54,954 nt of DNA from NCBI GenBank assembly GCA_965644315.1, contig CBFFRQ010000171.1:1-54954 (forward strand). Direction: 5' to 3'. The translations under genes and the position numbers were made by a program. The notes beneath the pieces are model-generated. The model was not told where the DNA came from. It saw nothing but the letters and a program-made list of their open reading frames with translations, and did no database searches. This stretch comes from Caecitellus pseudoparvulus. Its lineage: Eukaryota; Protista; Bigyra: Bicosoecida. Shown here piece by piece: positions 1 to 34,378 of the stretch. Every line of letters starts with the position of its first letter. Position 1 is the stretch's first letter.

Positions 1-1325
1 TAACCCTAACCCTAACCCTAACCCTAACCCTAACCCTAACCCTAACCCTAACCCTAACCCTAACCCTAACCCTAACCCTAACCCTAACCCTAACCCTAAC
101 CCTAACCCTAACCCTAACCCTAACCCTAACCCTAACCCTAACCCTAACCCTAACCCTAACCCTAACCCTAACCCTAACCCTAACCCTAACCCTAACCCTA
201 ACCCTAACCCTAACCCTAACCCTAACCCTAACCCTAACCCTAACCCTAACCCTAACCCTAACCCTAACCCTAACCCTAACCCTAACCCTAACCCTAACCC
301 TAACCCTAACCCTAACCCTAACCCTAACCCTAACCCTAACCCTAACCCTAACCCTAACCCTAACCCTAACCCTAACCCTAACCCTAACCCTAACCCTAAC
401 CCTAACCCTAACCCTAACCCTAACCCTAACCCTAACCCTAACCCTAACCCTAACCCTAACCCTAACCCTAACCCTAACCCTAACCCTAACCCTAACCCTA
501 ACCCTAACCCTAACCCTAACCCTAACCCTAACCCTAACCCTAACCCTAACCCTAACCCTAACCCTAACCCTAACCCTAACCCTAACCCTAACCCTAACCC
601 TAACCCTAACCCTAACCCTAACCCTAACCCTAACCCTAACCCTAACCCTAACCCTAACCCTAACCCTAACCCTAACCCTAACCCTAACCCTAACCCTAAC
701 CCTAACCCTAACCCTAACCCTAACCCTAACCCTAACCCTAACCCTAACCCTAACCCTAACCCTAACCCTAACCCTAACCCTAACCCTAACCCTAACCCTA
801 ACCCTAACCCTAACCCTAACCCTAACCCTAACCCTAACCCTAACCCTAACCCTAACCCTAACCCTAACCCTAACCCTAACCCTAACCCTAACCCTAACCC
901 TAACCCTAACCCTAACCCTAACCCTAACCCTAACCCTAACCCTAACCCTAACCCTAACCCTAACCCTAACCCTAACCCTAACCCTAACCCTAACCCTAAC
1001 CCTAACCCTAACCCTAACCCTAACCCTAACCCTAACCCTAACCCTAACCCTAACCCTAACCCTAACCCTAACCCTAACCCTAACCCTAACCCTAACCCTA
1101 ACCCTAACCCTAACCCTAACCCTAACCCTAACCCTAACCCTAACCCTAACCCTAACCCTAACCCTAACCCTAACCCTAACCCTAACCCTAACCCTAACCC
1201 TAACCCTAACCCTAACCCTAACCCTAACCCTAACCCTAACCCTAACCCTAACCCTAACCCTAACCCTAACCCTAACCCTAACCCTAACCCTAACCCTAAC
1301 CCTAACCCTAACCCTAACCCTAACC
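1..1325. repeat. Telomere, (TAACCC)n = (TTAGGG)n on the - strand; left chromosome end
   Basis: 220 perfect TAACCC hexamers (1-1320) plus a partial TAACC, then an abrupt transition to unique sequence. Confidence 0.99.
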
Positions 1326-4252
1326 TAACTTTCCAAATGTCAAGCTAATCACAAGTTGTGAAGTGCTAACATTGCCTAATCCAGGCGCTCGTGCACCCAA
1401 GTGTGGTGTTGCACAGTGCTTGCTGGTTGGGTGGTGCGCACCGGGGCGGGGTAGTGCGAATTCCGCACACCATCGCACCGTGGCTCCCAGTTTGCGCCCT
1501 CGGTCGGGGCATGCACCTGGGATCGACATCAAAAGCATCATTGACAAGCATCATGAACGCCCAAGTGGATCAAGTCCTGGGGGTCCTCTTCGTGGAGGGG
1601 TGCCTGAAGCGCAAGCAAGTGCTCGGCCCCAGAACAGGTGTCTTCACTGACATGCCACGTCGGGGTGCCGCACGCACCTTCGAGCTTGGAGGACCCCTGC
1701 CCAAGACTGATCATGATAGTTCATCTTCGGCACGGGACATGTGGCTCGAGGTCTATGGGGAAGCCGCCGAACGGCTGATCCCAGGGCTGAGTGCGGAATT
1801 CGGCAACGCCAATGCGGCCCTGCGCCAGGGACCCACCGGATCGCCAACCATCCTCGTCACGCTCGGAAGTGAGGGTGATTCACCAACAGTGGCACGTCAA
1901 CTTCGCATTCTTGCTGCTCAAGAGGACGACTTCGCCATTCGAGTCGGCCAAGGTGGGTTCGTCGCCGTGGCCTACACCAACACCAAGCAGTTCGCATCGG
2001 CGAAGGCGAAAGTGAAGGTGAAGGCCCACCCCACCGCCATCCAAGTGGCCCACCAAGTGACCAAGGAAGCAACCGAAATCGCCTGCCAGTCAGGTGATGT
2101 TGCCAAGGTCATGTGCCTCGTTAGGTCCCACTTCGACCATGGCCCCGTGCCAGCCCAAGCCGTCCGTCCCAGTGTCAGACAATCCGTCCCCTCCGAGGGT
2201 GATGCACCTGTCGACACCAAGACACCATCGACCTGGACTGACACTCAGCTCGACAAGGCACCGAAGAAGAAGAAGACCCGTCGAGGCAAGCGAGGAAAGG
2301 GCAAGTCAGCCGGACGATCCCTCACCTTCGAGGACGTCTTCATCAAGAACGTCCGGCCACCTGCACCTCGACCAACCTCACCACCTGCCACCCAAGGCTC
2401 ACCCAAAGATACCGTCACCACCCCTGTGGTGCATGCCATGTTGCCTTCATCAAGGGTGCAGCGGGGCGTCGACCGCAAGTGGCCGTCCCCCACCCCGTCG
2501 GGCGAGGCAAGCCCCGAGGTGCACCGGTATCGGCCGTCTGCAGCAGCAGCATGGGAGGTGATCACAAGGGTGGTGCCTCTTCATGACAGTGTGCGGACAC
2601 CCGAGCACCTGGCCGAGTACCCCATCAAGCCTGGCCCTCTGGCCGACCTGCTGTCATCGACCCACGTGTACTCTAACGTGGGGGGGCGGGCCTGTGTCCA
2701 GGCCTGTCTCGAGACGGCAGCAGGGGAGAGGGTCTTCGAGGCTGGGGACCTCCTCCTACTCCAGCATGCAGCCACCATCAACGCTGCCCAGCTTGCCTTC
2801 AAGCACATGGTCAGGCAGCTGGAGGGGGTGGTCAGTGACTCGTCCAGCTCGGACATCATGGACGTCGGCCAGAAGCCACCCTCCCCCTTCCGCTCAGACG
2901 GGCAACGGGTGGCCGTCTTCCGCAACATGCTGCACCAGCACTCGCCGGATGACACCTTCCTGGCCCCAGGTACACCACCAGTCCTGCTTCCCGGCCTGCA
3001 CCTGCTCATCGACCGCATCAACCAAGGGTACCGTGCCCCAGCCGGGCATGATGACCTTGGCCAGGCCGGCGTCGACCCCAGCCAGGTTGATGAAGAGGGT
3101 GACCAAGAGGGGCACCTCGACGGAGTGCTGTATGCCTTCGCACTTCGAGAGGTGTGGACCGACAACACGGCCCATCTGCAGCTCATCCTCGTCGACCATG
3201 ATCGAGGCAAGCTGGTGCTGTGGAACCCCGACATCCCTGACCTCCATGACGAGCTGCCCCTGCACAAGTGCATGACCCGGCTGGCAGCCGAAGGCATCAA
3301 CGTCTTGTACCGGATCTGGACCACACCCGAGGCGGGCAGTCCAGCACCCTTCCGGGACAGGCTTCGAGGGGCACTCCAGTCTCTCCGAGATGACTTCCCC
3401 CCCCTGCCTCACAAGGCCACCGACGGCACCGTGCACCCCCAGACCCTCATCGCTGGCAAGGGCACAAGGGTGGCCATGCCTCATGGGCGGATGACCCGAC
3501 AGCAGGCCGCCACCCTGGAGGCTGAGGTCAAGGACCCCCTCAAGCGGCTGGTGCCTGAAGACGGCGAGGGTCGCCTGCCCAAGGTCAAGGATGTGCCCCA
3601 CATCTCGATCGGGCAGATGGGTGGACGCCTGATGTAAGTCACCTGTGGGGGCATACTCCCTGTGCCACACATGACTGAAGCTTTGTGTCGCGACCGACGC
3701 ACATAGCTGACATCGGACATTGGAAAGTCCAACCCAACCTCACCATCACCAACCCAACATCGATACCAACACATCAGGACTCGGCTCAGTGGAAGGGGAA
3801 GGCACTTGCAGCAAGATCTGTGAGGCCGCCCCCAAACCTGAGCCGAAGGGACAGCCGGGCTGGGTCGTGTGCTTGCATCTCAGCAACACCCAGTCCGTGT
3901 CGAGTCCATATCCTCCAGCCCACACCGCCACCCAAGCCAAGCAAGTCGGGTCTCCACCCCTGGACATCGGACCGAGACGGACGAGACTGGACTGGACGGA
4001 CAAGACAAGAGTGGACCGAGACCTGGACCTACACCTCAAGACCATCCCACCGGGGCGGGCGCTGAAGCGCCAAGACAGACGGCGACTTATACAACGGACA
4101 CGAGTCTGTGCTAGTCGCAAAGCCGTGCAAGCGGTGCCGTCGTGGTGTCTGTGTCACTGCATTCTGTTGTGGCGCAGGTGGCACCACATGTCCAAGCCCA
4201 AGCTGTACCATGATGTAGCCTGCATGGAGGCAATCTGCAATGCATTGAGTAG
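1326..4252 (+). mobile_element. Unit A: telomere-terminal, RT-less retroelement unit (single protease-like ORF plus structured 3' end)
   Basis: Bounded by the telomere and by CTAACCCTAACCCTAAC (4253-4269). Its ORF is visibly paralogous to the N-terminal half of the unit C polyprotein and its last ~200 nt align with unit B. No APE or RT motifs recognisable. Confidence 0.75.
1553..3637 (+). CDS. Unit A ORF: basic/disordered N-terminal part plus putative papain-fold (Cys-His-Asn) protease domain
   Basis: Open frame 1391-3637 with in-frame ATGs at 1511 and 1553 (start uncertain). Motifs KKKKTRRGKRGKGK, YSNVGGRACVQACLET (Cys 2693), AHLQLILVDHDRGKLVLWNPD (His 3173, Asn 3224) each have a counterpart in unit C. 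Confidence 0.75.
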   Translation: MNAQVDQVLGVLFVEGCLKRKQVLGPRTGVFTDMPRRGAARTFELGGPLPKTDHDSSSSARDMWLEVYGEAAERLIPGLSAEFGNANAALRQGPTGSPTILVTLGSEGDSPTVARQLRILAAQEDDFAIRVGQGGFVAVAYTNTKQFASAKAKVKVKAHPTAIQVAHQVTKEATEIACQSGDVAKVMCLVRSHFDHGPVPAQAVRPSVRQSVPSEGDAPVDTKTPSTWTDTQLDKAPKKKKTRRGKRGKGKSAGRSLTFEDVFIKNVRPPAPRPTSPPATQGSPKDTVTTPVVHAMLPSSRVQRGVDRKWPSPTPSGEASPEVHRYRPSAAAAWEVITRVVPLHDSVRTPEHLAEYPIKPGPLADLLSSTHVYSNVGGRACVQACLETAAGERVFEAGDLLLLQHAATINAAQLAFKHMVRQLEGVVSDSSSSDIMDVGQKPPSPFRSDGQRVAVFRNMLHQHSPDDTFLAPGTPPVLLPGLHLLIDRINQGYRAPAGHDDLGQAGVDPSQVDEEGDQEGHLDGVLYAFALREVWTDNTAHLQLILVDHDRGKLVLWNPDIPDLHDELPLHKCMTRLAAEGINVLYRIWTTPEAGSPAPFRDRLRGALQSLRDDFPPLPHKATDGTVHPQTLIAGKGTRVAMPHGRMTRQQAATLEAEVKDPLKRLVPEDGEGRLPKVKDVPHISIGQMGGRLM

Positions 4253-4269
4253 CTAACCCTAACCCTAAC
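4253..4269. repeat. Interstitial telomeric tract CTAACCCTAACCCTAAC (junction A/B)
   Basis: Read directly; same strand polarity as the terminal telomere. Confidence 0.95.
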
Positions 4270-4455
4270 GGGCAGGGACCTGCCCTAGCAAGTGGCGGCA
4301 GATATAACGGGTGCAAGCCTGTGTTTGTTGCGAATCCGCGCCAAGCGGTAGCCGCTGTGGCGTCCTACATGTGCAGAGGTGCATTGTGGGGCGCCCGTGT
4401 GACGCTCAAGCTGTACGGTGCCAAGCTGTGCCGAGGTGAAATGCATTGTGAGTTG
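4270..4455 (+). mobile_element. Unit B: ~186-bp 3'-terminal fragment (heavily 5'-truncated copy or SINE-like unit) of a related element
   Basis: Flanked on both sides by telomeric tracts; aligns by eye with 4058-4252 (shared caagcggt(a)gccg, caagctgtac, aatgcattg..gagt(a/t)gctaacc) but is clearly diverged. Confidence 0.7.
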
Positions 4456-4479
4456 CTAACCCTAACCCTAACCCTAACC
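4456..4479. repeat. Interstitial telomeric tract (CTAACC)4 (junction B/C)
   Basis: Read directly. Confidence 0.95.
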
Positions 4480-7400
4480 AAAAGCGCCACTGGCAGCGCG
4501 GGGGCAGCTCAGCCGGGCACAGTCTCTGTGGCACCTGCAACGGGGGAAGAAGAGAGCGAAACGCTGCCCCACACGTGCAGCACGGCACCCCATTCCAACC
4601 GTTGTGGTGAGAGGAGAGCCTCAGGCAGCACAGTGGCAGCAAAACCCACACCAGGCTCTGCTGCACCTGGAAAGAATCAGGCGAAGGGCCTGCCATCCCC
4701 CACACCAACAGCGGAACCCTGCCTGACGAGTGTTGACAGCCACGACAGATCAGTAGATGCTGATCAGACGGACACAGCACAAAGACGTTCACCATCAGGC
4801 GAAACGGGGGGAAACACACGGCACCCTCGCACAAAGACAACAAAGCGAGGGCGGCGTGGAAGGAGAAGTGCACGTGCATTCGAACAAGGGAAGCGAAATA
4901 TGGGAAAGGTAAAAGATTGCACAGACACACGGCAAGATCATGCACCTCACTCCGCACCCGACAAACGGAAAGGGCCAAGAGTGATACACCCTTCCTGGGA
5001 GGAGATCTTGCAAACAGATATCTCTGTTCCCCCTCAAAGCGATCTCCCAACATCCAGGGTGAAAACGCCACACGCAGGAAAAGGGAGCTCACCCAGCACA
5101 AGTCAAGCTTACATCCCTGGGCTCTCAGCTGGAAAGGCAGCAACCACCACTCATAGCATTTCATTGCCAAATGCGGGTGGCAAACATACCCCAACCAGTA
5201 CACAAAGTGTCAAGGAGACCCTGCACCGGAAGCAAGGCGGGCAACACACTGGAAACACTGATAAACGGGCGGCGGCAAATATCCGCCATGACGTTTCATC
5301 ACCCACGGAAAGCAAAAAGGAACTGGACACAACTGCTCGTGCCGATCTGACCACTCAATGTCCTGCTTCGGCTCATCAGACCACTCCCAGCGCAAACGCA
5401 GAAGCGACAGCTCCGCCCCAAAGCGTTTCACCCATACCGCACAGTTCAACGAGCAAATGCTCCAAGCTCGACAGGTCGGTGAGGCCTTCGAAGGAAGGAA
5501 ACGCTGCTTCACGTACCACTGTACCGAAGAAAACCGCGAAAGCCACTGCCAAGTACGATTGGACTTCCGCGCTTGACTACAACATCAGCCTCGACGAACA
5601 GGTAGCCTTCCTTCTAGCTAAATGCCGTGAAGAACTCGAAGACCGCCCCCGTGGTGTCGAGGCGGAGGCGGCCGGGGCGCCCACCAGCCCCGCTCTCCCC
5701 GCGGAGGGCAGGCGTGGCGGGACAGGCGGGCAGGCACCTGCGGAAGTTGAGGTGATCACCACCCACCCCGGCCGAGACCGCCGACACCCCCGTGGTGTCG
5801 AGGCGGAGGCGGCCGGGGCGCCCACCAGCCCCGCTCTCCCCGCGGAGGGCAGGCGTGGCGGGACAGGCGGGCAGGCACCTGCGGAAGTTGAGGTGATCAC
5901 CACCCACCCCGGCCGGAACCGCCGACACACTCGTGGTGTCGAGGCGGAGGCGGCCGGGGCGCCCACCAGCCCCGCTCTCCCCGCGGAGGGCAGGCGTGGC
6001 GGGACAGGCGGGCAGGCACCTGCGGAAGTTGAGGTGACCACCACCCACCCCGGCCGGAACCGCCGACACCCCCGTGGTGTCGAGGCGGAGGCGGCCGGGG
6101 CGCCCACCAGCCCCGCTCTCCCCGCGGAGGGCAGGCGTGGCGGGACAGGCGGGCAGGCACCTGCGGAAGTTGAGGTGACCACCACCCACCCCGGCCGAGA
6201 CCGCCGACACACTCGTGGTGTCGAGGCGGAGGCGGCCGGGGCGCCCACCAGCCCCGCTCTCCCCGCGGAGGGCAGGCGTGGCGGGACAGGCGGGCAGGCA
6301 CCTGCGGAAGTTGAGGTGACCACCACCCACCCCGGCCGGAACCGCCGACACCCCCGTGGTGTCGAGGCGGAGGCGGCCGGGGCGCCCACCAGCCCCGCTC
6401 TCCCCGCGGAGGGCAGGCGTGGCGGGACAGGCGGGCAGGCACCTGCGGAAGTTGAGGTGACCACCACCCACCCCGGCCGGAACCGCCGACACACTCGTGG
6501 TGTCGAGGCGGAGGCGGCCGGGGCGCCCACCAGCCCCGCTCTCCCCGCGGAGGGCAGGCGTGGCGGGACAGGCGGGCAGGCACCTGCGGAAGTTGAGTTG
6601 ATCACCACCCACCCCGGCCGAGACCGCCGACACACTCGTGGTGTCGAGGCGGAGGCGGCCGGGGCGCCCACCAGCCCCGCTCTCCCCGCGGAGGGCAGGC
6701 GTGGCGGGACAGGCGGGCAGGCACCTGCGGAAGTTGAGGTGACCACCACCCACCCCGGCCGGAACCGCCGACACACTCGTGGTGTCGAGGCGGAGGCGGC
6801 CGGGGCGCCCACCAGCCCCGCTCTCCCCGCGGAGGGCAGGCGTGGCGGGACAGGCGGGCAGGCACCTGCGGAAGTTGAGGTGATCACCACCCACCCCGGC
6901 CGGAACCGCCGACACCCCCGTGGTGTCGAGGCGGAGGCGGCCGGGGCGCCCACCAGCCCCGCTCTCCCCGCGGAGGGCAGGCGTGGCGGGACAGGCGGGC
7001 AGGTACCTGCGGAAGTTGAGGTGATCACCACCCACCCCGGCCGGAACCGCCGACACACTCGTGGTGTCGAGGCGGAGGCGGCCGGGGCGCCCACCAGCCC
7101 CGCTCTCCCCGCGGAGGGCAGGCGTGGCGGGACAGGCGGGCAGGCACCTGCGGAAGTTGAGGTGATCACCACCCACCCCGGCCGAGACCGCCGACACACT
7201 CGTGGTGTCGAGGCGGAGGCGGCCGGGGCGCCCACCAGCCCCGCTCTCCCCGCGGAGGGCAGGCGTGGCGGGACAGGCGGGCAGGCACCTGCGGAAGTTG
7301 AGGTGATCACCACCCACCCCGGCCGGAACCGCCGACACCCCCGTGGTGTCGAGGCGGAGGCGGCCGGGGCGCCCACCAGCCCCGCTCTCCCCGCGGAGGG

Positions 7401-9069
7401 CAGGCGTGGCGGGACAGGCGGGCAGGCACCTGCGGAAGTTGAGGTGACCACCACCCACCCCGGCCGGAACCGCCGACACACTCGTGGTGTCGAGGCGGAG
7501 GCGGCCGGGGCGCCCACCAGCCCCGCTCTCCCCGCGGAGGGCAGGCGTGGCGGGACAGGCGGGCAGGCATCTGCGGAAGTTGAGGTGATCACCACCCACC
7601 CCGGCCGGAACCGCCGACACACTCGTGGTGTCGAGGCGGAGGCGGCCGGGGCGCCCACCAGCCCCGCTCTCCCCGCGGAGGGCAGGCGTGGCGGGACAGG
7701 CGGGCAGGCACCTGCGGAAGTTGAGGTGATCACCACCCACCCCGGCCGAGACCGCCGACACACTCGTGGTGTCGAGGCGGAGGCGGCCGGGGCGCCCACC
7801 AGCCCCATCCCACCTGCGAAAAGTACTCATGGAGAAGAAGATGTAACAGACGCCGCCAAGGCTGCCACTCACCACCCTCTTGCGGAACTTGGGGTAGAAC
7901 GGCGTGATGCTTCACTGTCACCGCGAGGCCAACAGGGCCAACGTGGCGAGTCAGCGACCGCCAGGATCGACCATCGCGAAGGGGAGCCTGTGACAACCCT
8001 CATTACGGATGCTGAGGTGTCGGATGTGCCGACCTGCGGAACTTTGTCCCCCACGACGAAGTGGCGCGAAGATGCTGCGACAGGCGACGACGACTACCTG
8101 CAAGCTGCCCACGCAGCAGTAGTACGCGCCTCCACCGCCTTTCTGGCCGCAACTCGCGATCTTGAGTCGCCCATCATCGACCTCGAAGTCTCCCAGGACT
8201 CGCTGGCTCCAGCATGCGCGGGTGCGGGCGAGGATGCCGCGGCGGGGCCGGACGAAACGCTGCCTGAGATCCGGCATCCAGGTCGCACGCGAGACCATGC
8301 GGCGTGGCTCCGCGACCACGCTGGTGCGGCAGCAACAGGCTCCAGGGACCTTCCCCGGGTCCTGGCACAGGAACACGCCCGGACGCCGACGCTTGACTTC
8401 CGCCGCACGCCCAAGGGCCACCCCCTCCATGCCCTTGGGCTTGAGAGGACCTTCGTCAACGCGACGGGCAGCTCATGCGGCCAGGCGGTTCTTCAAACGC
8501 TTCTACAAGACACCCCCAACGGAAGCATGTGGACGACGCACTTCCGACATGCGACCATCCTGGAGAACGCGTTACGCATCGCGTCGTGCCCAGGTCCGGT
8601 GGAGAGCATGAGTTCCGCAGCTATGTCACTTAGCCCATCGGAGGCGGGGGACACACTGGGACCACTGATGTCCGCGGCCAGAGCCGTCCACATGGCCAGT
8701 GCACACGTGGGCCCCGACGAGTCATGGCCACCTCGGATGCTTCTCGCATCCCTGGTCCTGCTCGTCGAACTTACGAACGAAAGTCTCGCTCTTGATGACT
8801 CGAAGCGGGCTGCGTTCGCGGTGGGGTTGATGAAGTCGAAAACGGACCAGGGCCACGTGGCCACGCTGGTCTTCGACCACGTCAACCAATGCACCACCAT
8901 CATCGATCCGGACACCCCGGACAGGGCCAGCTGGGTGGAGGTGCACGGACCTCTGCCCGAAACCGGGGAGCCACCCATGCCCCCTGCCTCGAGGCCATGT
9001 TCACGGTCTACACGTGTGTCCCGGCCTCGCACGGAAGGGAGGGCATGGTGGATGCCCGGTTACGCTTAG
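4480..9069 (+). CDS. Unit C polyprotein part 1: disordered/basic region, 47-aa tandem repeats, putative papain-fold cysteine protease
   Basis: Frame of ORF 4321-9069 (its GTG start lies in unit B and crosses telomeric repeats as LTLTLTLT; first ATG inside unit C is 4900). FVNATGSSCGQAVLQTLLQ (Cys 8476), GHVATLVFDHVNQCTTIIDPD (His 8854, Asp 8905). Homology to ORF A switches to the -1 frame at ~8965-8985. Confidence 0.75.
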   Translation, partial: KSATGSAGAAQPGTVSVAPATGEEESETLPHTCSTAPHSNRCGERRASGSTVAAKPTPGSAAPGKNQAKGLPSPTPTAEPCLTSVDSHDRSVDADQTDTAQRRSPSGETGGNTRHPRTKTTKRGRRGRRSARAFEQGKRNMGKVKDCTDTRQDHAPHSAPDKRKGPRVIHPSWEEILQTDISVPPQSDLPTSRVKTPHAGKGSSPSTSQAYIPGLSAGKAATTTHSISLPNAGGKHTPTSTQSVKETLHRKQGGQHTGNTDKRAAANIRHDVSSPTESKKELDTTARADLTTQCPASAHQTTPSANAEATAPPQSVSPIPHSSTSKCSKLDRSVRPSKEGNAASRTTVPKKTAKATAKYDWTSALDYNISLDEQVAFLLAKCREELEDRPRGVEAEAAGAPTSPALPAEGRRGGTGGQAPAEVEVITTHPGRDRRHPRGVEAEAAGAPTSPALPAEGRRGGTGGQAPAEVEVITTHPGRNRRHTRGVEAEAAGAPTSPALPAEGRRGGTGGQAPAEVEVTTTHPGRNRRHPRGVEAEAAGAPTSPALPAEGRRGGTGGQAPAEVEVTTTHPGRDRRHTRGVEAEAAGAPTSPALPAEGRRGGTGGQAPAEVEVTTTHPGRNRRHPRGVEAEAAGAPTSPALPAEGRRGGTGGQAPAEVEVTTTHPGRNRRHTRGVEAEAAGAPTSPALPAEGRRGGTGGQAPAEVELITTHPGRDRRHTRGVEAEAAGAPTSPALPAEGRRGGTGGQAPAEVEVTTTHPGRNRRHTRGVEAEAAGAPTSPALPAEGRRGGTGGQAPAEVEVITTHPGRNRRHPRGVEAEAAGAPTSPALPAEGRRGGTGGQVPAEVEVITTHPGRNRRHTRGVEAEAAGAPTSPALPAEGRRGGTGGQAPAEVEVITTHPGRDRRHTRGVEAEAAGAPTSPALPAEGRRGGTGGQAPAEVEVITTHPGRNRRHPRGVEAEAAGAPTSPALPAEGRRGGTGGQAPAEVEVTTTHPGRNRRHTRGVEAEAAGAPTSPALPAEGRRGGTGGQASAEVEVITTHPGRNRRHTRGVEAEAAGAPTSPALPAEGRRGGTGGQAPAEVEVITTHPGRDRRHTRGVEAEAAGAPTSPIPPAKSTHGEEDVTDAAKAATHHPLAELGVERRDASLSPRGQQGQRGESATARIDHREGEPVTTLITDAEVSDVPTCGTLSPTTKWREDAATGDDDYLQAAHAAVVRASTAFLAATRDLESPIIDLEVSQDSLAPACAGAGEDAAAGPDETLPEIRHPGRTRDHAAWLRDHAGAAATGSRDLPRVLAQEHARTPTLDFRRTPKGHPLHALGLERTFVNATGSSCGQAVLQTLLQDTPNGSMWTTHFRHATILENALRIASCPGPVESMSSAAMSLSPSEAGDTLGPLMSAARAVHMASAHVGPDESWPPRMLLASLVLLVELTNESLALDDSKRAAFAVGLMKSKTDQGHVATLVFDHVNQCTTIIDPDTPDRASWVEVHGPLPETGEPPMPPASRPCSRSTRVSRPRTEGRAWWMPGYA
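5650..7806 (+). repeat. Coding minisatellite, 141-bp (47-aa) unit, 15 full copies plus a partial
   Basis: cgtggtgtcgagg recurs at 5650, 5791 ... 7765 (period 141); unit RGVEAEAAGAPTSPALPAEGRRGGTGGQAPAEVEV(I/T)TTHPGR(D/N)RRH(P/T). Confidence 0.97.
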
Positions 9070-10099
9070 CTTGCGCACTTCACGGCTTGTTACGGCGCCA
9101 CCCTCCGTGTCGTCGCACGTGGAACGAGGAGGACGAGATGAAACGCGCGGGAACGCCGCTCTTCCTCCACGCCCACCGCACGTACGTGGAGGCCATCCCC
9201 CGGTCGCGTAGGGAGTCACTACCCTCGGTGGTTGACTCCTTTCCGCTATGGCGGCGGGAGATGTGGCAGCACACGCTGGGCCCGTGGCCGCATGTGACTA
9301 TACAGGCGGCCATGGGCGTGGTGTGGTCCATGCGACCTGCATCCCAGGCCATGGATTTCGTAGACGTCGTAGGAGGTCACGCTGCCCCTGGTGCTGCAAC
9401 GGGTGTTCTCGGTTCCGCGGAGGTGCCGCGGAACAGCCCTGAAGGCGCCGCGGGGCAGCCGTGCGGAACTTGGGCTGAGGGCGGCCCAGTACGCACCAGA
9501 CCCATCTCGGTGTCGCTGGCGACGTGGAACACGTGGAAGTCCCACAGCATGTACCCGGAGCTGGTGCTGTCCGCAGTTGAGTCAGTGACCCCGGATACGG
9601 CCGCCCTGGTCCTGGTGGTGACGGAGCCGGGCGGGGTGGGCATGCCGTCACTGGCCCAGCACGGCATGAGGTCGTACCGCCCACCAGTCCAACAGGACGG
9701 CGGTCGCAGCGAGGTGGCCATGATCGTGGACGATCGGCTCCGACCCAGGTTCCTACCGGAGCAGGAGAGTCAGGTGGACGGGCGCTGCCTTGTGGTGGCG
9801 GAGGTGGACGCGGTGTCACCTCCGCTGCTGGTGGTAGGCGTGTACATGCCGGTACTGCGGCCGCACAGCATCACGCGGAAGCACGCGAGAGTTAGCCCGC
9901 CTGAACAAGGTGAGGACCACCGTCCCGGTGTTCCACCTTCAACTGGAACACGGGACATGGACGTGGAACAGGTGGACACGGGCGCCCTGCCAGACCGGGC
10001 CGAAGTCTGGGCTGGCCTCGAGCTCTTGGCGAGCCGCTACGGCCCCACCCACCAGCTGGCGTTCCTTGGCGACTTCAACTGCCATCCCGGAACAGGGGG
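8969..10099 (+). CDS. Unit C polyprotein part 2: end of protease-like domain and N-terminal two thirds of APE endonuclease
   Basis: Frame of ORF 8889-10238: SLATWNT, LVVTEP, GRSEVAMIV, VVGVYMP, LAFLGDFNCH are the canonical ordered EEP/APE motifs. Confidence 0.88.
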
Positions 10100-13000
10100 A
10101 TGCAGTTCTGGGAGCGGATGGGGTGGTCCTGTCCTGGAACACCGAAGAAGCCGGCATCCGACGTCGGATCCTTCGACAGATGGACCCACCAGCACGGTCT
10201 CTTGCCGAGTCCGGGGTCAGGAAACGCGACCCACATGAAGTACGGACGGTGCCTGGACCACATATGCCTGTCCAGGCCCGTGTACGAACGCGCGGAACAC
10301 GGAAGAGTGGTGACCACCTTCAGCACGGGCGACGCCAGGTCCCCACAGGACCTGCTCCTCTCGGACCACGCTTTGGTGCATTGTACGGTCACGCTGCATG
10401 GTGCCACAGCCCCCCCAGGCCGAACACGGAACACTCGCAGGCCGGTGGCCCCATTCGAAGACCCCGGTGTGTTCCAAACCTCCACCCGGGTCACCCAGTA
10501 CGCCAGACATGCTGGCGATAGGCTGGCCCAGAGTGCCAAGAACACCCAGGGGCCGCGGGCCGGAACACCGCACATACCACCCTCCTTGGGTCACATCGGC
10601 CGAGTCCTGCACAAAGCGGCATGCGCTGTCTTCGCCAGGGGCAGGAGTTCCAGGGCCGACCATGGCCTGCGGCCGGCCCGCCGCAAACGCAACCAAAAAG
10701 TTGCAGAGGTCCGGAGACTCCGGCGCAAGTTGAGACGACTCCGAACACACCATCTGGAAGAACACCCTTCAGGTGACTCGGTTGCAAGGCGGCGTGCCCT
10801 GGCGATCTCTAGTTTAGAAGTTAGTCTCCGAGAATCGACCCTGCGCTGCAGGGCGGCTCACAACGAGGTGGCTCGCGCGAAGGCCGATTTTAAGAAGGAG
10901 ACCGCCTCCAGGCTAAGGAAGCATATCAACATGCTCGCCAAGGAGCACCCTTTCACGGCGCATCAACTCATCTGCCGTGCGCTGGGCCGAAGAGCCGGAG
11001 GCCTGGCGCCAACTGGCCTCGCGCTGCAGGCCGGCCAGGCGGTGACCGAGCCGGCCCAGGTGGTGAAAATCTTGCATTCTCAGATGAGATCTGTGATAGC
11101 ACAGCCACCCAGTACCGACTTGGACGGACTCAGTGCAGCCCACTTTGAGGGTCTGCTGCCTCCAATTTCCGCAGGGAGTGACTCGGGAGCCCTTGGAGAG
11201 CCGAAAATCTTCAACTTTGAGGCGGTCCTCAGAGCGACCAAGTCACTGCGGAAACACCGCAGCAGTGGTCTGTCGGAACTCAAGGCCGAACACTGGGCCT
11301 ACGCAGGCCCGGATGTTCTGAGATGCCTCGCAGAGACGCTACAGCACCTAGTGAAGGGAGACGGTCTCCTGCCACGGGAGCTGCACCACGGCAAGGGAGT
11401 ACTGCTCGCAAAGAAGGGTCAGACCCCCGGGGTCGCGTCGACCTACCGGCTGATCGTGTGCCGGAGCCCGCTGAGCAAGCTGGTGAACAGTGTTCTTGCA
11501 TTCAGGCTGGAACAAGCCGTCCAAGGCCTCATCACTCCGCAGCAAGCAGGGTTCTCCAGAGGCCGCGGGTGCCACGAGCACGTTTTTGCGATGCTCGAAG
11601 GACCACGAACAGCACTGAGAACAGCGACCGCGACGTGTTCCCGGGACATAAGACCCAAGAACAGCCCTCCACAGGCCGTTTTCGCCGTGTTCATCGACTT
11701 TCGAAAGGCTTTCGACTCCGTTGATCACAGGGCGTTGCGCGTGCTGCTAGACCACCTGCCGCTGGACCGCACCACCAGGCGACTCCTCGTGGATTTCATC
11801 GAGAACGCCAGCGTCTGCATCGACACGGAACACGGCATGACCGAGGCCATTCACGCGACCAGTGGCGTAGCGCAAGGAAGCGTCCTCTCGCCCCTCCTAT
11901 TCAAGATCGCGGTCGACCTGGTGTCCCGTGCGCTCTCCTTGAACCACATTCCGGGGGAGGGAACGGGGGAAAAACCGACACTGGGGGTCAAGCTACTGCA
12001 TTCAAAGGGGGACCCAGTCCACACTGGACCCCGATTCAGCCACGCGCTGTACGCAGACGACCTGGGACTCGTCGTAGACAGCGCGGACGCCGTGATCCGT
12101 GCGATCACCATCGTCAGGCGGGTCGGGGCGCTGCTGGGGCTCAGAGTCAACGCCTCCAAGTCGGCCATCATGATCATGCGACCAACACCACGACTTGCGT
12201 ATCGCATGAGCCGACTCCATGTGCAGATAGTCAGCGCCAAGAAACGCCTTGCTGCGGAGTCACAGGCGCTAACCGTCGACGGAAAGCGGATCCCTCTCAC
12301 GGACGAGTACGAGTACTTAGGAACACCGCTACAAGCCAAGCTGTTCATACAACATAAAACAGCTCGTCGACATGCCGCAACCACCTTGAGCATGGCTGGG
12401 CATTCTTCTGTGGCGATTTCTGCGGCCGAATGGCTCGCCCCATCGGCAGCGCACCGCCTTTTGAGGACCTCAGTGGTCGCTGCAGCGGACTACACGCTGG
12501 CCATCACCGGCAAGCACTCGCTCATGCCCGACCGCATGTGCGACAATGCCGTTGGCAGTGTTCTGGACAAATCCGTGTTCGGTTTTCAGCTCCATCCGAT
12601 GCGCGTCCAACACGGCGCGGTCCTTGCAGCGGCTGGTATTCCTCTGACGCACATGCGCACGATGCGAAGTCGCATTGGTTTCATAGTCCGGACACTTAAG
12701 CAGGCTGTGGTGGATTCGCCTGCTTTCAGAATCCTGATGGTGAGCGTGTGGCAGGGCCGAACGATGGTCGCGGACGTCCCGGACGAGAGGGTCCCTTCGG
12801 CCCTACTTTTGGAAGACGTAGCGGCCTCAAAGCACACCTTTTACGGTACAGGCACTCCGTGGGCGGTCAGACCCCTACTTGAGTTGCGCCTGTTGGGGTA
12901 CCACGAGGGTGTGTTCGGCGTTCTGGCCATGGCCGCGAGGTGGCACGATTTGAGCGGAAATCGGGACACCACGGCCCTACACGAAGAGATGCGATCTCTT

Positions 13001-14260
13001 CAAAAGGCCTTAAAGCTGCCCAAGAACACGGCCCAAAACGGCCCGAAGTTGTTCGTCGCAACAAGTGTTCCTGTGGCCTCTGCGAGGTTCGACAGGTCGG
13101 TTGACTTCCCGGCCACTTTCACGTTGAGGCAGCGTTTGGACCTCCTGGAGTCGTACTTGTTCATTGCACGAACGCAAAGAACAGACACGTATCGGGAGAC
13201 CATGTTCCTACCTGCTGAGTACCCGGGCCACTCGCCTCGGGGAGAAATAGGCGACAAAAGAGTGAATCCGACGCTCTCGCCGAGGCCTCACCATTTGGAC
13301 GTCCGAGCGCGAACACACGCGGAACTGCATCCTATTCCGAGTGTTCCCTGTAGTGCTTGGACTGCCTGTCACCCTGACAGAAGCCCGTTGCCGAAGGTGT
13401 TCATGCTGCAGACACAGCAGCTCCTGCATCCGGGTGCACTCCTGACACCGTATATCGCATGTCCCCTCTGTCTGGACCCCGAAATACGCGATGCGGAGTT
13501 CATTTTAGACCACATTCTGCTGGACTGCCCTTCAGTGTCTCCAGAACGTCTGGCGTTCTTCCGAGAGGCAGCGCAGAACATGCAGGACTGTGACGAAGCG
13601 GCGAAGTCAACCGCTGTGCCGAGGCGGCCGACGGCCGAGGCCCTTCGGCACCCACCTCTGAGATACGTCACCATTCCAGAAAGCCTGCACACAGCGGTGC
13701 AGGCTGGCTGTCAACTGGACACTGGAACACGTATCGCATGCCAGAACACCCGGGCGTTGCTGAAGCGGCTCGCCCTGTGTGGTCAGTGGCCCACGGGAGC
13801 ACCCGAGTGTGCGGACTGGGATCACGCAACTTGTGCTGCCCTCACGGCGCCACACATGGAACGGTTGCGTGTTCCAGTCCGAAACTCGACCCATCTACTG
13901 GACCAAGCCCCAGTGAAAGCCGCTGAAGCATTGGAGGCATTTGCTGGGCCCTTGCGGCAAAAGTTACTCCCGAATTCTGGGGGTGCCGCTGACGGCAAAA
14001 GTTTCTACTGGCCCCACGAGGTGGTCGCCGCACCTCCCGGATGGGTGCAAGTCCTGAAAACGTGCATCCGGTACTGTGGGGCCGTGTTTGATCACGTGGT
14101 AGAAGCTCAACTTCGGGGCGCAGGTGTGGAACGCGGGCAGCCCGCCGCGGACCTCGCGCGGCGAGCCCGCTACACGGCCGCCACGCCTGCTGCCTGGACC
14201 ATGCCAAGCCACCTCGCTCCCGGGCGAGATGGCGCAGCAGAGGAGCAAGAAAGTGAGTGA
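10100..14260 (+). CDS. Unit C polyprotein part 3: APE C-terminus, reverse transcriptase, CCHC zinc finger
   Basis: APE end TH..GRCLDHIC..SDHALV; RT motifs YRLI, QQAGFSRGR, FIDFRKAFDSVDH, GVAQGSVLSPLLF, LYADD (12050), GLRVNASKS, YEYLG; CPLC-x13-HILLDC at ~13460-13530. Confidence 0.95.
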   Translation: MQFWERMGWSCPGTPKKPASDVGSFDRWTHQHGLLPSPGSGNATHMKYGRCLDHICLSRPVYERAEHGRVVTTFSTGDARSPQDLLLSDHALVHCTVTLHGATAPPGRTRNTRRPVAPFEDPGVFQTSTRVTQYARHAGDRLAQSAKNTQGPRAGTPHIPPSLGHIGRVLHKAACAVFARGRSSRADHGLRPARRKRNQKVAEVRRLRRKLRRLRTHHLEEHPSGDSVARRRALAISSLEVSLRESTLRCRAAHNEVARAKADFKKETASRLRKHINMLAKEHPFTAHQLICRALGRRAGGLAPTGLALQAGQAVTEPAQVVKILHSQMRSVIAQPPSTDLDGLSAAHFEGLLPPISAGSDSGALGEPKIFNFEAVLRATKSLRKHRSSGLSELKAEHWAYAGPDVLRCLAETLQHLVKGDGLLPRELHHGKGVLLAKKGQTPGVASTYRLIVCRSPLSKLVNSVLAFRLEQAVQGLITPQQAGFSRGRGCHEHVFAMLEGPRTALRTATATCSRDIRPKNSPPQAVFAVFIDFRKAFDSVDHRALRVLLDHLPLDRTTRRLLVDFIENASVCIDTEHGMTEAIHATSGVAQGSVLSPLLFKIAVDLVSRALSLNHIPGEGTGEKPTLGVKLLHSKGDPVHTGPRFSHALYADDLGLVVDSADAVIRAITIVRRVGALLGLRVNASKSAIMIMRPTPRLAYRMSRLHVQIVSAKKRLAAESQALTVDGKRIPLTDEYEYLGTPLQAKLFIQHKTARRHAATTLSMAGHSSVAISAAEWLAPSAAHRLLRTSVVAAADYTLAITGKHSLMPDRMCDNAVGSVLDKSVFGFQLHPMRVQHGAVLAAAGIPLTHMRTMRSRIGFIVRTLKQAVVDSPAFRILMVSVWQGRTMVADVPDERVPSALLLEDVAASKHTFYGTGTPWAVRPLLELRLLGYHEGVFGVLAMAARWHDLSGNRDTTALHEEMRSLQKALKLPKNTAQNGPKLFVATSVPVASARFDRSVDFPATFTLRQRLDLLESYLFIARTQRTDTYRETMFLPAEYPGHSPRGEIGDKRVNPTLSPRPHHLDVRARTHAELHPIPSVPCSAWTACHPDRSPLPKVFMLQTQQLLHPGALLTPYIACPLCLDPEIRDAEFILDHILLDCPSVSPERLAFFREAAQNMQDCDEAAKSTAVPRRPTAEALRHPPLRYVTIPESLHTAVQAGCQLDTGTRIACQNTRALLKRLALCGQWPTGAPECADWDHATCAALTAPHMERLRVPVRNSTHLLDQAPVKAAEALEAFAGPLRQKLLPNSGGAADGKSFYWPHEVVAAPPGWVQVLKTCIRYCGAVFDHVVEAQLRGAGVERGQPAADLARRARYTAATPAAWTMPSHLAPGRDGAAEEQESE

Positions 14261-15364
14261 TAAAAGCTTGCTTTGGGTTGATAGTGCATTCTAAGATGTT
14301 ATTCCGAAATTCCCAGTGTCGTAACGCGCGGCGGGGCCGTTTTGGGTCGCGGGGTGGCGCGGTGTGCGCGGGGTCGCCGCGGCGCCCCCAACACACCAAG
14401 GCCGAAACCCGCACCCAACTCGCCCAACAGGCGCCGAACGCCTGAACAACGACGACTAACATTGAACTACCATGTTCTGAAAAGAACAAGCTTACTTCAC
14501 ATGGTGACTCACCATGCTTTGTGCAAGATATGTGTACGGAGCAAGCGAGCGCTGTGGCCCGCTTCTTTCGAGGAGCAAGTGTGAGGTGAGTGTGGTGAAA
14601 AAAAAACAAGAGGCGACAATGCATTGAACTTCCTAACCTTTGATTTGCTAACCTTTACCTTGAAGGAACTGTCGGACCAGTGCATGTGTGTCCGCTTGCG
14701 AGCCTTCAACTGCGGTTCTTTTGCCACTCGTCGGCGCATCTGCCTGAACGCGTGCATTCCGGCGGCGCTTGCGGCCAGACATGGCAGCAAATCATTCCAA
14801 GAGTATGCTCAAAACTTGCTGTGAATAGTTTAAAAGTAGAGTTTGATATCCATATCTGCACTGCTCGCCATGGTACACAAACCACTGCCAGCAAGTGGCA
14901 AATTCCGCATGCTAATAGGCTCGATAAACAACGCTCTGTTGCACACGACAGAGCGACCGTTCAAGTTTAACATCCTCTGTTAGTGTCAAGGTGACAAAAC
15001 ATGCTGCCTGCAGCACTTTTCCGTGAACTTCAAAAAATGCATTCGGCCTCCGCTGGCCTCAATGAGACACGGCCCAGCCGCCACGCCTACCCTTCATTGG
15101 CAGAGCGGGGCTGGAAGTCGCCTCGGCCGCCCCCGCATTGACACTACCTGGGTGTTGGCGGGCCCGGCCAAGATTATGGGCGGGGTTGTCGTCTTAGCAA
15201 GCTATCATGACAACCAAAAGAATGCAAATACGATCAAACACACAGGTCTGCAACTTGCAGAGTATTCCTGTACACTGGATCCTATTTGTACTCTTTTGTC
15301 GGAGAGAACTGAAACTATATTGCCTGTATCCATTCTCTGTTCATCGAAGTGTCTGGGCTGCTGC

Positions 15365-31440: not shown

Positions 31441-34378
31441 ATGGCAGGCCAAGATGGGGACATTGTGGGAATCTCCACGAGAGATGGGAGGGTCACTGTG
31501 GAAGTCGATGATGAGAAGCTCCAGCAGTTCGGGCAGCTGAAGGCCATTGGTATGTGCGGAAGTAGGCCAAGAAACGGCCGCAAGGCGCCCCACCCAATGG
31601 CTTCAAGCCTTGCGCAGGAAAGGGAAAGTTCTCCACTGTGTTCCGGGCAAAGCACACCGCGACAGGTGACTTTGTGGCGCTGAAGCGCATTCAAATCTTC
31701 AACATGATGGACGAAAAGTCTCGGTGGGTGCTGCCTGGCGCTGGCGTGGTGCCTTGCTGCACTTTGCCGCTGTAGCGTGCCGCAGGGAAAAGTGCTTGAA
31801 GGAGATCCACTTGGTGCAGTCAGTTTCTCACCGGAACATCATTGCCTTCCATGACGCATTCATCGTCAACAAAGAGCTCTGGCTGGTCTTTGAGTACGCA
31901 GAGGCTGGTGACCTGAAGCGCCAGCTGCGCAAAGCACGGTGCGTGCGCCCAGCGTCTGCAGCCTCGCCTGAGCCCAGCACGGGCCCCATCCCGCCGACCA
32001 GCACTGACCCTGAAAGCATACCCCACCCCACCGGCTCGCGTGCAGGGAGCGCAATGCGCGGTTCGACGAGCGCGTGATATGGAAGTACTTTAGCCAAGTT
32101 GCAGCAGGTGCGTGCCCGGCGCTTGCCTCGCCCTGCATGCCACGCTACAGAGGTATCTGCGCGATGGCCCTTCACAGCTGTTGCACACATGCACGAGCGA
32201 CACGTGATGCACCGCGACTTGAAACCTGCCAACATCTTCCTCACCCTGAATGGGACTGTGAAGGTGGGCGACTTGGGCCTGGGCCGGTACCTGTCAGAGC
32301 ACACCCTGGAAGCCTTTAGCAAGGTAGGCACACCTCTGTACATGTCCCCTGAAGTGCTGCAGGGCAAGGGGTATGACTACAAGAGTGACGTGTGGAGCTT
32401 GGGCTGTGTGCTGTACGAGCTGGCCATGCTCATCTCCCCCTTCAAGGAGGAGGGCCTGAACCTGTACGGACTGTTCCAGAAGATCTCCAAGGGCACGTAC
32501 CCGGGCATCTCCACGCTGTACTCCACTGAGCTGCAGGACCTGGTCGCCCGCATGCTCAGCAGCGACCCCGCGGCGCGCCCCGACATGGGGGAAGTCACCC
32601 GCATCTCCTGCGCACTGCTGGAGCGCTTCGAGCAGCAGCGGCAGGCTGACCGGGCTGCCGCCCCGCCTGCATCCACTCCGGCAGGCGGAACAGCTGCCGC
32701 AGAAACAGTTGCTCAGCAGCAAGCACCTGACCCCGAGCAGGCTGCCGCTGCCGAAGTCGCAGCCGCCGCTGCCGCAGACGCTGCAGGGCCCGGCGAAGGC
32801 AAGACTGGCGACGGCAGCACCCCAACGCAGCCTACTGCAGGGGCCTCCCGTGGTCAGGCTGGGAGATCGGAACGGCAGGGAGGCGCTGGGAGTGGCGTGG
32901 CAGTGCACGCGCCTGAGGCTGCACCTGGCAGTGACCCTGCCACGACGCCCGTTGCACGTGGTGGCGCTGCGTCAGTTCCTCGTACCAGCCCGCCCAAGGG
33001 CTTCGTCGGGGAGTTGCTTGCGCAGCGCGACGCTCTGGCGCTCAGTGCACGTGCCGTCAGTCGCCTGCAGTGCCTCGGGTATGAGGTGGGGTGGGCGGCA
33101 GCCTTGGACACGCCGCCCCTGCCGCCGTACTACTTCGCAGTTCCTGATGCTGTCGGCGCTGCTGGAAGCACTGTCGCGCAGTTCCACACATTTGCATCCC
33201 TGGTGAGCTGGTGCTTGAGTATCTTGCGCGACCCACCCCGTTCTCGTGGTGCCACCTCCGTTTTAGGTCGCGCAACTGCCGATTGCATTGCATGGGGGCC
33301 GGAGGGCAAGTACGGCCCGCCAAATGTCATGGGAGATGCGGTTTGCCGCAGTTTGCAGGAGGCTGCGGGCGCACCGGCGGCGCTGGTGGATGCTTGCCTT
33401 CCACGGGACGTCGCGGCAGGCCACGGACTGGCAGTGGCGCGGTTGCTGGACTTTGCGGCACACAGCGCCCTCACTCACATAGGCTGGCGCTGGGAGGCGC
33501 CAGCCTTTCCTCCCTCGGGCGACGGCGTGGAGGAGGACGAGGGCGCTGGGCAGGAGGTGGATGGGGCTGACGGTGGTGTGGCGGAGGCGGTGGTGGGCGG
33601 CGACGGCGCCGTGGACAGCGACGAGGATGTGTTGTTCTCCGAGGAGCGCAAGACAGACCATGACGCAGGCGTTGGTGACACTGCGCGGAGGGATTTTGTC
33701 CGCTCCAATGTGTCCCCACAGGCGTGGAGCAAGGAGGTGGAGCGTGTCAAACGCAGCATTGCAGCCCGCCTCCGCAGCATGGGGTTGGTTGACGTCACCG
33801 CAGCGGCGCAAGCGGGTGGAGGCGGCTGGCGAGCCCACTTTGCAGCCACGCAGGCCAACCACGAGCGCTTGCAGCGCAGTCAGCCCAAGGACGGGCTGGC
33901 CACCGGCGCTGCGCTGGCCGCACTGGAGCGCTCAGGTGCAGGTGCAGGGGACGCGGCGGAACGCATTCGCTCAGCGGAAACCCGCATCAACGCAGAACAC
34001 AGCGGGGACGGCGGTGTCATCGGCCAGTACCGCACGCTACACGAGCAAGCCGTTACCCTGCGCGAAACAGTGCAGGCGTTGAGCGCGCAAGTGGAGGAGG
34101 GTGCAACGCATTTGGCCGAGCTGGGGGAGGAGGTGGAGGCGCTGGAGGAGGCTGTAGCAGCCCGTGGAGACAGTGTGTCTGACGCCTCCCCCTTGCAGCG
34201 CATCCGCACCGCTCTCGCTGCCCTGCGCAAGGAGAAGCAAGGCCTGGGCGTGCGACTGGGCATCGCTCTGCAGCGATGGGAGGCTGCCTGCGCCAGGGCA
34301 GCTGAAGAAAAGCGCCAGGCCGCGCGCAAGGGAGCACATGATTCAGACTTGGAGTTTGAGGATGAGGAGGCACCGTGA
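31441..34378 (+). CDS. NEK6/7-like NIMA kinase fused to an IFT57 (HIPPI)-like domain; four short introns
   Basis: Introns ~31550-31617, 31724-31785, 31939-32045, 32108-32177 give IGKGKFSTVFRA..VALKRIQIFNMMDEKSREKCLKEI..HRDLKPANIF..GDLGLGR..VGTPLYMSPE. Same final exon continues into YYFAVP..QFHTFASLVSW..WSKEVERV..WRAH..ERIRSAETRIN..SVSDASPLQRIR, typical IFT57 blocks. Confidence 0.88.

Follow-up and report, generated by a model that had tools for sequence, protein, structure and literature searches.

How does a chromosome end come to be built from a chain of retroelement units set apart by telomere repeats, and what kind of elements are these? The question is raised by contig CBFFRQ010000171.1 of Caecitellus pseudoparvulus (assembly GCA_965644315.1), of which we analyzed positions 1–54,954 of the forward strand (54,954 nucleotides, referred to below as the window). 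A stack of three units, A, B, and C, lies within the first ~14.7 kb. A preliminary description, made from the letters alone, had presented this stack as a polarized chain of members of one telomere-targeting family, with C as the autonomous, A as a nonautonomous, and B as a minimal type. Our analysis indicates that the chain most likely represents three separate insertions of telomere-dedicated retrotransposons lacking long terminal repeats (non-LTR elements) of the long interspersed nuclear element (LINE) type, all belonging to one deep clade.

A polarized stack of LINE units

The window starts with a terminal telomere tract of about 220 CCCTAA repeats on the C-rich strand (1–1325; this and all other features of the stack are on the + strand), which contains 1320 nt of perfect repeats (4–1323) and meets unit A through one irregular repeat, CCTAAC. 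Unit A (1326–4252, 2.9 kb) is a coding element that lacks a reverse transcriptase (RT). It is followed by a telomeric spacer, CTAACCCTAACCCTAAC (4253–4269; 17 nt, 2.8 repeats), by unit B, which is the 3′ end of a 5′-truncated element (4270–4455, 186 bp), by a second spacer, (CTAACC)4 (4456–4479), and by unit C, a near-full-length LINE with an APE-type endonuclease and an RT (4480–14632, 10.15 kb). Beyond C lie one CTAACC (14633–14638) and degenerate telomere-like remnants that include a second CTAACC (14648–14653), after which unique subtelomeric DNA follows. The two spacers and the single units at 14633 and 14648 are the only short CTAACC runs in the window. Every open reading frame (ORF) of the A, B, C region and all three 3′ tails are carried by the C-rich strand, and the boundaries and common orientation given in the preliminary description are correct to the base.

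Comparison of the three units with each other by blastn and tblastx gave nothing at E < 1e-3. This divergence bears out the earlier view that they are old co-resident lineages rather than products of a recent duplication. The common 3′ terminus that had been reported is real in A, B, and C, but it is short: each unit ends in ATGCATTG, then 5 to 7 lineage-specific bases (AGTAG in A, TGAGTTG in B, and AACTTC in C), and then CTAACC, and C has the terminal box only.

This terminal pattern allowed the placement of the elements to be assessed in the whole 30.6-Mb genome, where it occurs 152 times (119 forward and 33 reverse), compared with 0 occurrences of a reversed control, a difference much too large to be due to chance. 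Of these 152 sites, 100 were listed, and at 98 of them the element is situated no more than 30 kb from a contig end and has its 5′ end facing outward. The RT matches (38 + 57) are all near contig ends wherever the distance was checked, again with the 5′ end outward. Internal copies scattered in random orientation were not found, and the positions of tails and RT copies agree with the proposal of a polarized, telomere-targeted family; copies in one orientation and confined to chromosome ends are the mark of a telomere-specific LINE. Every tail continues into CTAA or more, including tails that border non-telomeric or unique DNA, and stacks of a similar kind, with other members and other spacers, occur on dozens of contigs.

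The two exceptions among the 100 listed sites are one on contig C38, which is probably a chance match, and an interstitial fossil situated 155 kb inside a 1.35-Mb contig (G000:C18:155165; L031:1100–1290). The fossil has a C-type tail plus CTAACCCTAA, followed by a 73-nt piece that is 82% identical to the 3′ end of A, and may mark a former chromosome end or a site of fusion.

Variation between copies in truncation points, 5′ junctions, spacers, and downstream neighbors is a sign of retrotransposition, and the elements have the features that define APE-type LINEs, namely a LINE-type RT, an N-terminal APE domain with its catalytic motifs, and variable 5′ truncation combined with a common 3′ end. 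Neither a CCHC-bearing ORF1 of the R1 type nor a poly(A) tail was found; the tails end in CTAA(CC).

Autonomous families and an RT-less partner

Unit C has both enzymatic domains expected of the autonomous type that it had been taken for. Its RT core (11411–12323) matches Pfam RVT_1 with 91 bits (E = 1e-25), and a profile of the family RT, when searched against solved structures, has human L1 ORF2p as its best match (2e-35), with R2 at 1e-26 to 1e-29. The APE-type endonuclease domain lies at approximately 9510–10400, and downstream of the RT there is a C-terminal Cys-X2-Cys…His-X4-Cys motif (13460–13528; invariant columns C1621, C1624, H1638, and C1643 of alignment A1). This motif is invariant both in the family of C and in a second RT family in the same genome, described below. 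The 3′ untranslated region (UTR) of C (14261–14632) contains the box CAATGCATTG (14617–14626) and the tail AACTTC (14627–14632) and lacks poly(A). The N-terminal part of the polyprotein is dominated by an in-frame tandem repeat of 141 bp (47 codons; 5650–7806, 15.3 copies, 97% match), and a Pfam search of the N-terminal parts of C returned no family. Unitig depth falls to zero over 6330–6729 in each of the four runs, which would be expected if the repeat had collapsed.

In uninterrupted copies, the endonuclease scores 33 bits (second family) and 20 bits (C family) against Pfam Exo_endo_phos, which has a cut-off of 24.5 bits. The endonuclease motifs N, E, Y, D-N-H, and S-D-H are invariant across both families. 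An AlphaFold model of the C-family domain, with a predicted local distance difference test (pLDDT) score of 77, matched human APE1 and the TRAS1 and L1 endonucleases at E ~ 5e-10, and the TRAS1 endonuclease structure (1wdu) was among the best fold matches (template modeling score of 0.80 by target, root mean square deviation of 3.8). Residues 123–162 of this model (~9880–10000) form a low-confidence insertion of about 40 residues that is absent in the second family.

The polyprotein of C is in three pieces in the window, owing to 1-nt deletions at 8983 (in a C run) and at 10094 (in a G run, within the endonuclease domain) relative to two other copies. Programmed −1 frameshifting was considered and rejected because each homopolymer is one base longer in these other copies, and their frame is unbroken; the deletions are either mutations or homopolymer assembly errors. 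The longest uninterrupted frame among the other copies of C encodes 3394 aa. There are 14 RT copies of C in the genome, at 96 to 100% identity, with 5′ starts that differ from copy to copy (query positions 1, 247, 274, 402, 546, and onward to 779) and a ratio of nonsynonymous to synonymous polymorphism (pN/pS) of 0.19 to 0.24.

The second RT family is about 30% identical to C in its RT, comprises sublineages that are 52 to 63% identical, and gave at least 50 matches. Its autonomous elements are about 7.6 kb long and encode APE and RT in open frames of up to 2207 aa. Unit B belongs here. It occurs in full length and at 100% identity in at least 19 other places, and in all 14 copies whose upstream flank was read, the sequence runs on into the common sequence of the 7.6-kb APE-RT element. 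Since its identical copies are the 3′ ends of such elements, B is an ordinary 5′-truncated copy, dead on arrival, of an autonomous second-family element (tail TGAGTTG). Hence, its description as a minimal family member does not hold, and the same upstream continuation rules out that B is a small element resembling short interspersed nuclear elements.

Unit A consists of a 5′ leader (1326–1552), an ORF of 694 aa (1553–3637), and a 3′ UTR (3638–4252). At least 53 full-length 5′ ends of A are present in the genome, and the 40 of these that were scored are all identical (100%) over 231 nt of the 5′ leader region. A lies directly beneath the terminal telomere in more than 20 contigs and also forms A–A tandems with a regular period of ~2928 nt. 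Unitig k-mer depth in the source run, which is not a copy number, is ~3100 over A versus 78 over the unique 5′ part of C. A is thus an abundant, young, RT-less lineage.

A search of the 694-aa ORF against Pfam gave no match. Residues 96–690 are 39.5% identical, over 610 aa, to a second-family polyprotein in its N-terminal ~600 aa, and residues 364–694 are 40 to 47% identical (tblastn) to the stretch that directly precedes the endonuclease in ten copies of the second family. The ORF of A stops at the exact point where the second-family endonuclease would begin. Protein similarity between A and C is marginal (E = 0.019). Hence, A is indeed a coding, RT-less, nonautonomous member, as had been suggested, but it is kin to the second family and not a derivative of C. 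This kinship is visible only in protein searches against other loci and not when the units of the stack are compared with each other.

The C-terminal domain of the A protein (aa 364–694; 2642–3634) is conserved and has a Cys…His…(W-N-P-D) pattern; His178 is invariant in alignment A3, where Cys18 and Cys22 come close to invariance (≥90%). In structural searches with a predicted model of this domain (pLDDT 76), the top ~30 rows were papain-fold peptidases, with Z scores of up to 8.3 and a best Foldseek E value of 0.015; the matches include the C39 peptidase of PCAT1/ComA, Josephin, and phytochelatin synthase. A papain-like cysteine peptidase fold is therefore a plausible assignment based on the model. 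No CCHC pattern or zinc knuckle was found in A or in the N-terminal region of C, and Pfam yielded no knuckle.

The 5′ junctions of otherwise identical A copies vary and include CCCTAAC (in phase, ~20 copies), CCCAAAC, CCTAAAC, and CCCAAAAAC. Across the 53 junctions (window 1321–1335), copies have one to five extra A residues or one missing base just upstream of CTTTCC. This variation looks like untemplated addition or the use of variable start sites. Copies on contigs C32 and C151 have an unrelated 12-nt filler at the 5′ junction.

Probable priming on the G-rich strand

A and B have in common a conserved 3′ UTR of ~190 nt that is also found in second-family lineages. In A, this structured 3′-terminal RNA region spans 4069–4252 and ends with the box CAATGCATTG (4238–4247) and the tail AGTAG (4248–4252). 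An alignment of 13 lineages (A4) contains 46 predicted base pairs, of which 22 show compensatory changes. The terminal box is a perfect 10-nt palindrome, CAATGCATTG, in most lineages, and B instead has AAATGCATTG. The ATG of the box in B (4441) is in frame with the open frame of C across (CTAACC)4, and the first internal ATG of C is at 4900. The box could serve in dimerization or protein binding, or the upstream unit could provide a start or promoter through it.

To explain how the units reach the telomere, we favor, with moderate confidence, nick-primed target-primed reverse transcription with occasional chaining over pure end addition. The element RNA would end in ATGCATTG, the lineage-specific tail of 5 to 7 nt, and at least CUAA(CC), without poly(A). 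Its terminal telomere repeat would pair with the G-rich strand (…GGTTAG-3′), the 3′-OH of which would prime reverse transcription by the element’s own RT, and such priming gives the polarity seen here, with the 5′ end toward the tip and sense on the C-rich strand. This 3′-OH would usually come from a nick made in the G-strand by the conserved APE endonuclease. Head-to-tail joins without spacers may arise when the end of a nascent cDNA (…GTTAG-3′ in full-length A) primes on the next RNA. A would borrow the endonuclease and RT of the second family in trans, and indeed it shares with that family its N-terminal protein and the covarying 3′ RNA. The distal TTAGGG tract would be maintained by telomerase; a TERT gene is present in the genome (Telomerase_RBD, 79 bits, G000:C77:25738–26142, − strand) in an open frame of 1389 aa.

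The main rival, possible but considerably less likely in our judgment, is endonuclease-independent addition to chromosome ends in the manner of HeT-A/TART or Athena. Here, the CUAA(CC) tail would pair with the G-overhang of an eroded or repeat-less end, the end itself would prime the cDNA, and telomerase would re-cap the new 5′ end, such that the elements act as a back-up for end healing. The spacers on the proximal side of the elements fit this idea well, as they are very short: among 42 distinct junctions, the median is 12.5 nt, 37 are at most 24 nt, and five consist of just CTAA. Moreover, the innermost C-type copies meet unique DNA through a single CTAA(CC), and in 10 of the 53 full-length copies of A, CTAAC is all that lies between the copy and the distal element. 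Short spacers could, however, also come from template jumping or from repeat tails carried by the RNA. Some copies lie between long telomere tracts, and about 20 of the 53 full-length copies of A are flanked on either side by telomere repeats in phase, an arrangement consistent with a staggered cut that duplicated 5 bp (CTAAC). In addition, the APE catalytic motifs have all been kept across lineages that are only ~30% identical.

The age gradient in the stack also accords with end addition. The distal units A and B are 100% identical to other copies over the parts compared, whereas the proximal C differs by ~1% from its nearest copy, which makes strict sequential addition of C, B, and A plausible.

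Several observations weigh against nick-primed insertion of LINEs as we have outlined it. A random nick in a telomere of ~1.3 kb would give long spacers, and the spacers are short; genome-wide, only 31 of the 152 tails have four or more perfect repeats next to them, and terminal tracts measure 0.3 to 1.5 kb. Nicking would have to be nonrandom, or the primer would often have to be supplied by something other than the endonuclease. Three readings of the short spacers and joins remain, namely priming on bare or eroded ends, chaining of RNA on nascent cDNA, and variable repeat tails borne by the RNA. The 3′ end of the RNA is deduced from DNA junctions only, and the papain-like assignment is borderline, with Z about 8. 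The copy of C in the window has two frameshifts, real or due to homopolymer assembly errors, and the A–B–C junctions (4253–4479) are spanned by no read or long contig, the short unitigs breaking at repeats.

A further idea, which we regard as speculative and rather doubtful, is that the elements are more than telomere parasites and constitute a second, RNA-templated end-healing system beside telomerase. With RNA 3′ ends that resemble a telomerase template and cDNA ends of the form …GTTAG-3′, they would preferentially attach to ends that have lost nearly all repeats. If so, the elements would chain without spacers and return a telomerase-ready primer to the cell, and a Drosophila-like solution would coexist with telomerase in a distant eukaryote.

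Spread at the DNA level, by subtelomeric segmental duplication, break-induced replication, or gene conversion that carries the elements as dead passengers, is very unlikely. It could account for the identity of A and B to other copies and for the regular period of the A–A tandems, but identical copies have unlike 5′ junctions, spacers, and neighbors, truncation points vary between copies, and a pN/pS of ~0.2 indicates divergence under selection on the protein. Least probable is that the chain is a long-read assembly artifact in which repeat copies were misjoined at short telomere spacers, as the unspanned interval 4253–4479 and the homopolymer indels typical of noisy reads might suggest, given that like stacks recur on dozens of contigs and that unitigs from the source runs show several different continuations past the tail of A, as expected of true multicopy junctions.

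Relatives and known telomeric elements

An exhaustive HMMER search of 1.84 billion representative proteins gave 95,929 LINE-like proteins. Outside this genome, only two full-length close relatives were found, P0003 (2150 aa, on coral metagenome contig L067) and P0004 (3724 aa, on contig L066 from a public run), which come from other organisms; the next scores, ~177 bits, are at the generic LINE level. Neither contig has DNA similarity to the window or telomere repeats in the contig DNA at hand. In L066, two CAATGCATT boxes lie upstream of the gene. A word-based protein search with the RT gave only one weak match.

Phylogenetic analysis of 139 RT cores places C and the second family together with P0003 and P0004 in a single clade (support 99) with a long stem. 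The references were the 150 best library matches, with neither Repbase nor R1-clade sequences among them; the sister of the clade is weakly placed (support 10), and its nearest named neighbors are plant LINEs and one from an amoebozoan. Based on these sequence comparisons, both families apparently represent one deep, separate, and undescribed lineage without close named relatives. Full-text literature searches turned up no account of telomeric LINEs from either stramenopiles or Cafeteria-like flagellates. Copies of A and C at ~97 to 98% identity (window 1330–5675) are present in a marine metagenome run (X5) and in a run labeled as another organism (X9), which indicates that related marine strains or species also carry the family.

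Among characterized systems, TRAS1 and SART1 of Bombyx mori (R1 clade) are similar in being LINEs with APE and RT inserted in telomere repeats of a host with a telomerase gene, with sense on the C-rich strand and a constant phase of the 3′ junction. The structure of the 3′ UTR is important in SART1 (PMC7265360). In contrast to TRAS and SART, the tail here is a telomere repeat unit without poly(A), a giant polyprotein with a putative papain-like domain takes the place of an ORF2 and an ORF1 with zinc knuckles, a coding partner without RT is present in abundance, and proximal spacers are mostly shorter than four repeats. The nearest labeled RTs, in a tree built from library matches, are L1-like.

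HeT-A, TART, and TAHRE form polarized head-to-tail arrays at the chromosome ends of Drosophila, which is not known to have telomerase or telomere repeats, and their 3′ ends face the centromere; HeT-A is an RT-less, protein-coding partner that outnumbers the RT-bearing elements. The polarized stack and the RT-less coding partner are paralleled here. Unlike in Drosophila, a TERT gene is present, a TTAGGG tract of 1.3 kb caps the array, poly(A) is lacking, and the A protein is not Gag-like and has no zinc knuckles.

MoTeR1 and MoTeR2 of Magnaporthe and FoTeR of Fusarium are non-LTR elements embedded in the TTAGGG telomeres of telomerase-positive fungi and belong to a group with restriction-like endonucleases (CRE/SLACS-like) (PMC7367193, PMC12857005). 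They resemble the present system in having an RT-bearing and a shorter RT-less member and in forming stacks parted by short telomere tracts, whereas here the endonuclease is an APE domain on the N-terminal side of the RT, and the RT clade differs.

Athena and Coprina elements and terminons are endonuclease-deficient and Penelope-like, with a 3′ end complementary to the G-overhang. They have been reviewed (PMC6431247). Both this complementarity and the polarity at chromosome ends are the same here, but the RT is of the LINE type and accompanied by APE, not Penelope- or TERT-like. A Penelope-like identity, which the preliminary description had left as an option, is ruled out, as the best relatives are LINE RTs, an APE domain was found, and there was no GIY-YIG match.

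L1-clade LINEs, which include Zepp of Chlorella, have in common with the elements described here the combination of APE, RT, and a C-terminal Cys/His motif, with L1 ORF2p as the best solved relative. An ORF1 of the L1 type and poly(A) are lacking here, and the long stem branch and poorly supported sister position set these elements apart.

To our knowledge, retrotransposons dedicated to telomeres have been recorded in few lineages, namely insects, some fungi, Giardia, Chlorella, and rotifers. Such elements are central to the debate on the kinship of telomerase and retroelements. The system described here would unite a deep and independent clade of LINEs, a tail made of telomere repeat in place of poly(A), a covarying 3′ RNA, and an RT-less partner with a putative papain-like domain, all in a cell that retains telomerase. 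Its short proximal spacers and spacer-less tandems provide a testable handle on whether the endonuclease is needed or bare chromosome ends are used.

Elsewhere in the window, a single open frame (32099–34378, + strand) encodes a protein-kinase C-lobe (aa 26–166) and a complete IFT57 domain (aa 321–724), and a 739-aa protein in a public assembly is 99% identical to it. The frame may represent a fusion or two genes without a stop between them. The IFT57 domain marks a flagellated eukaryote.

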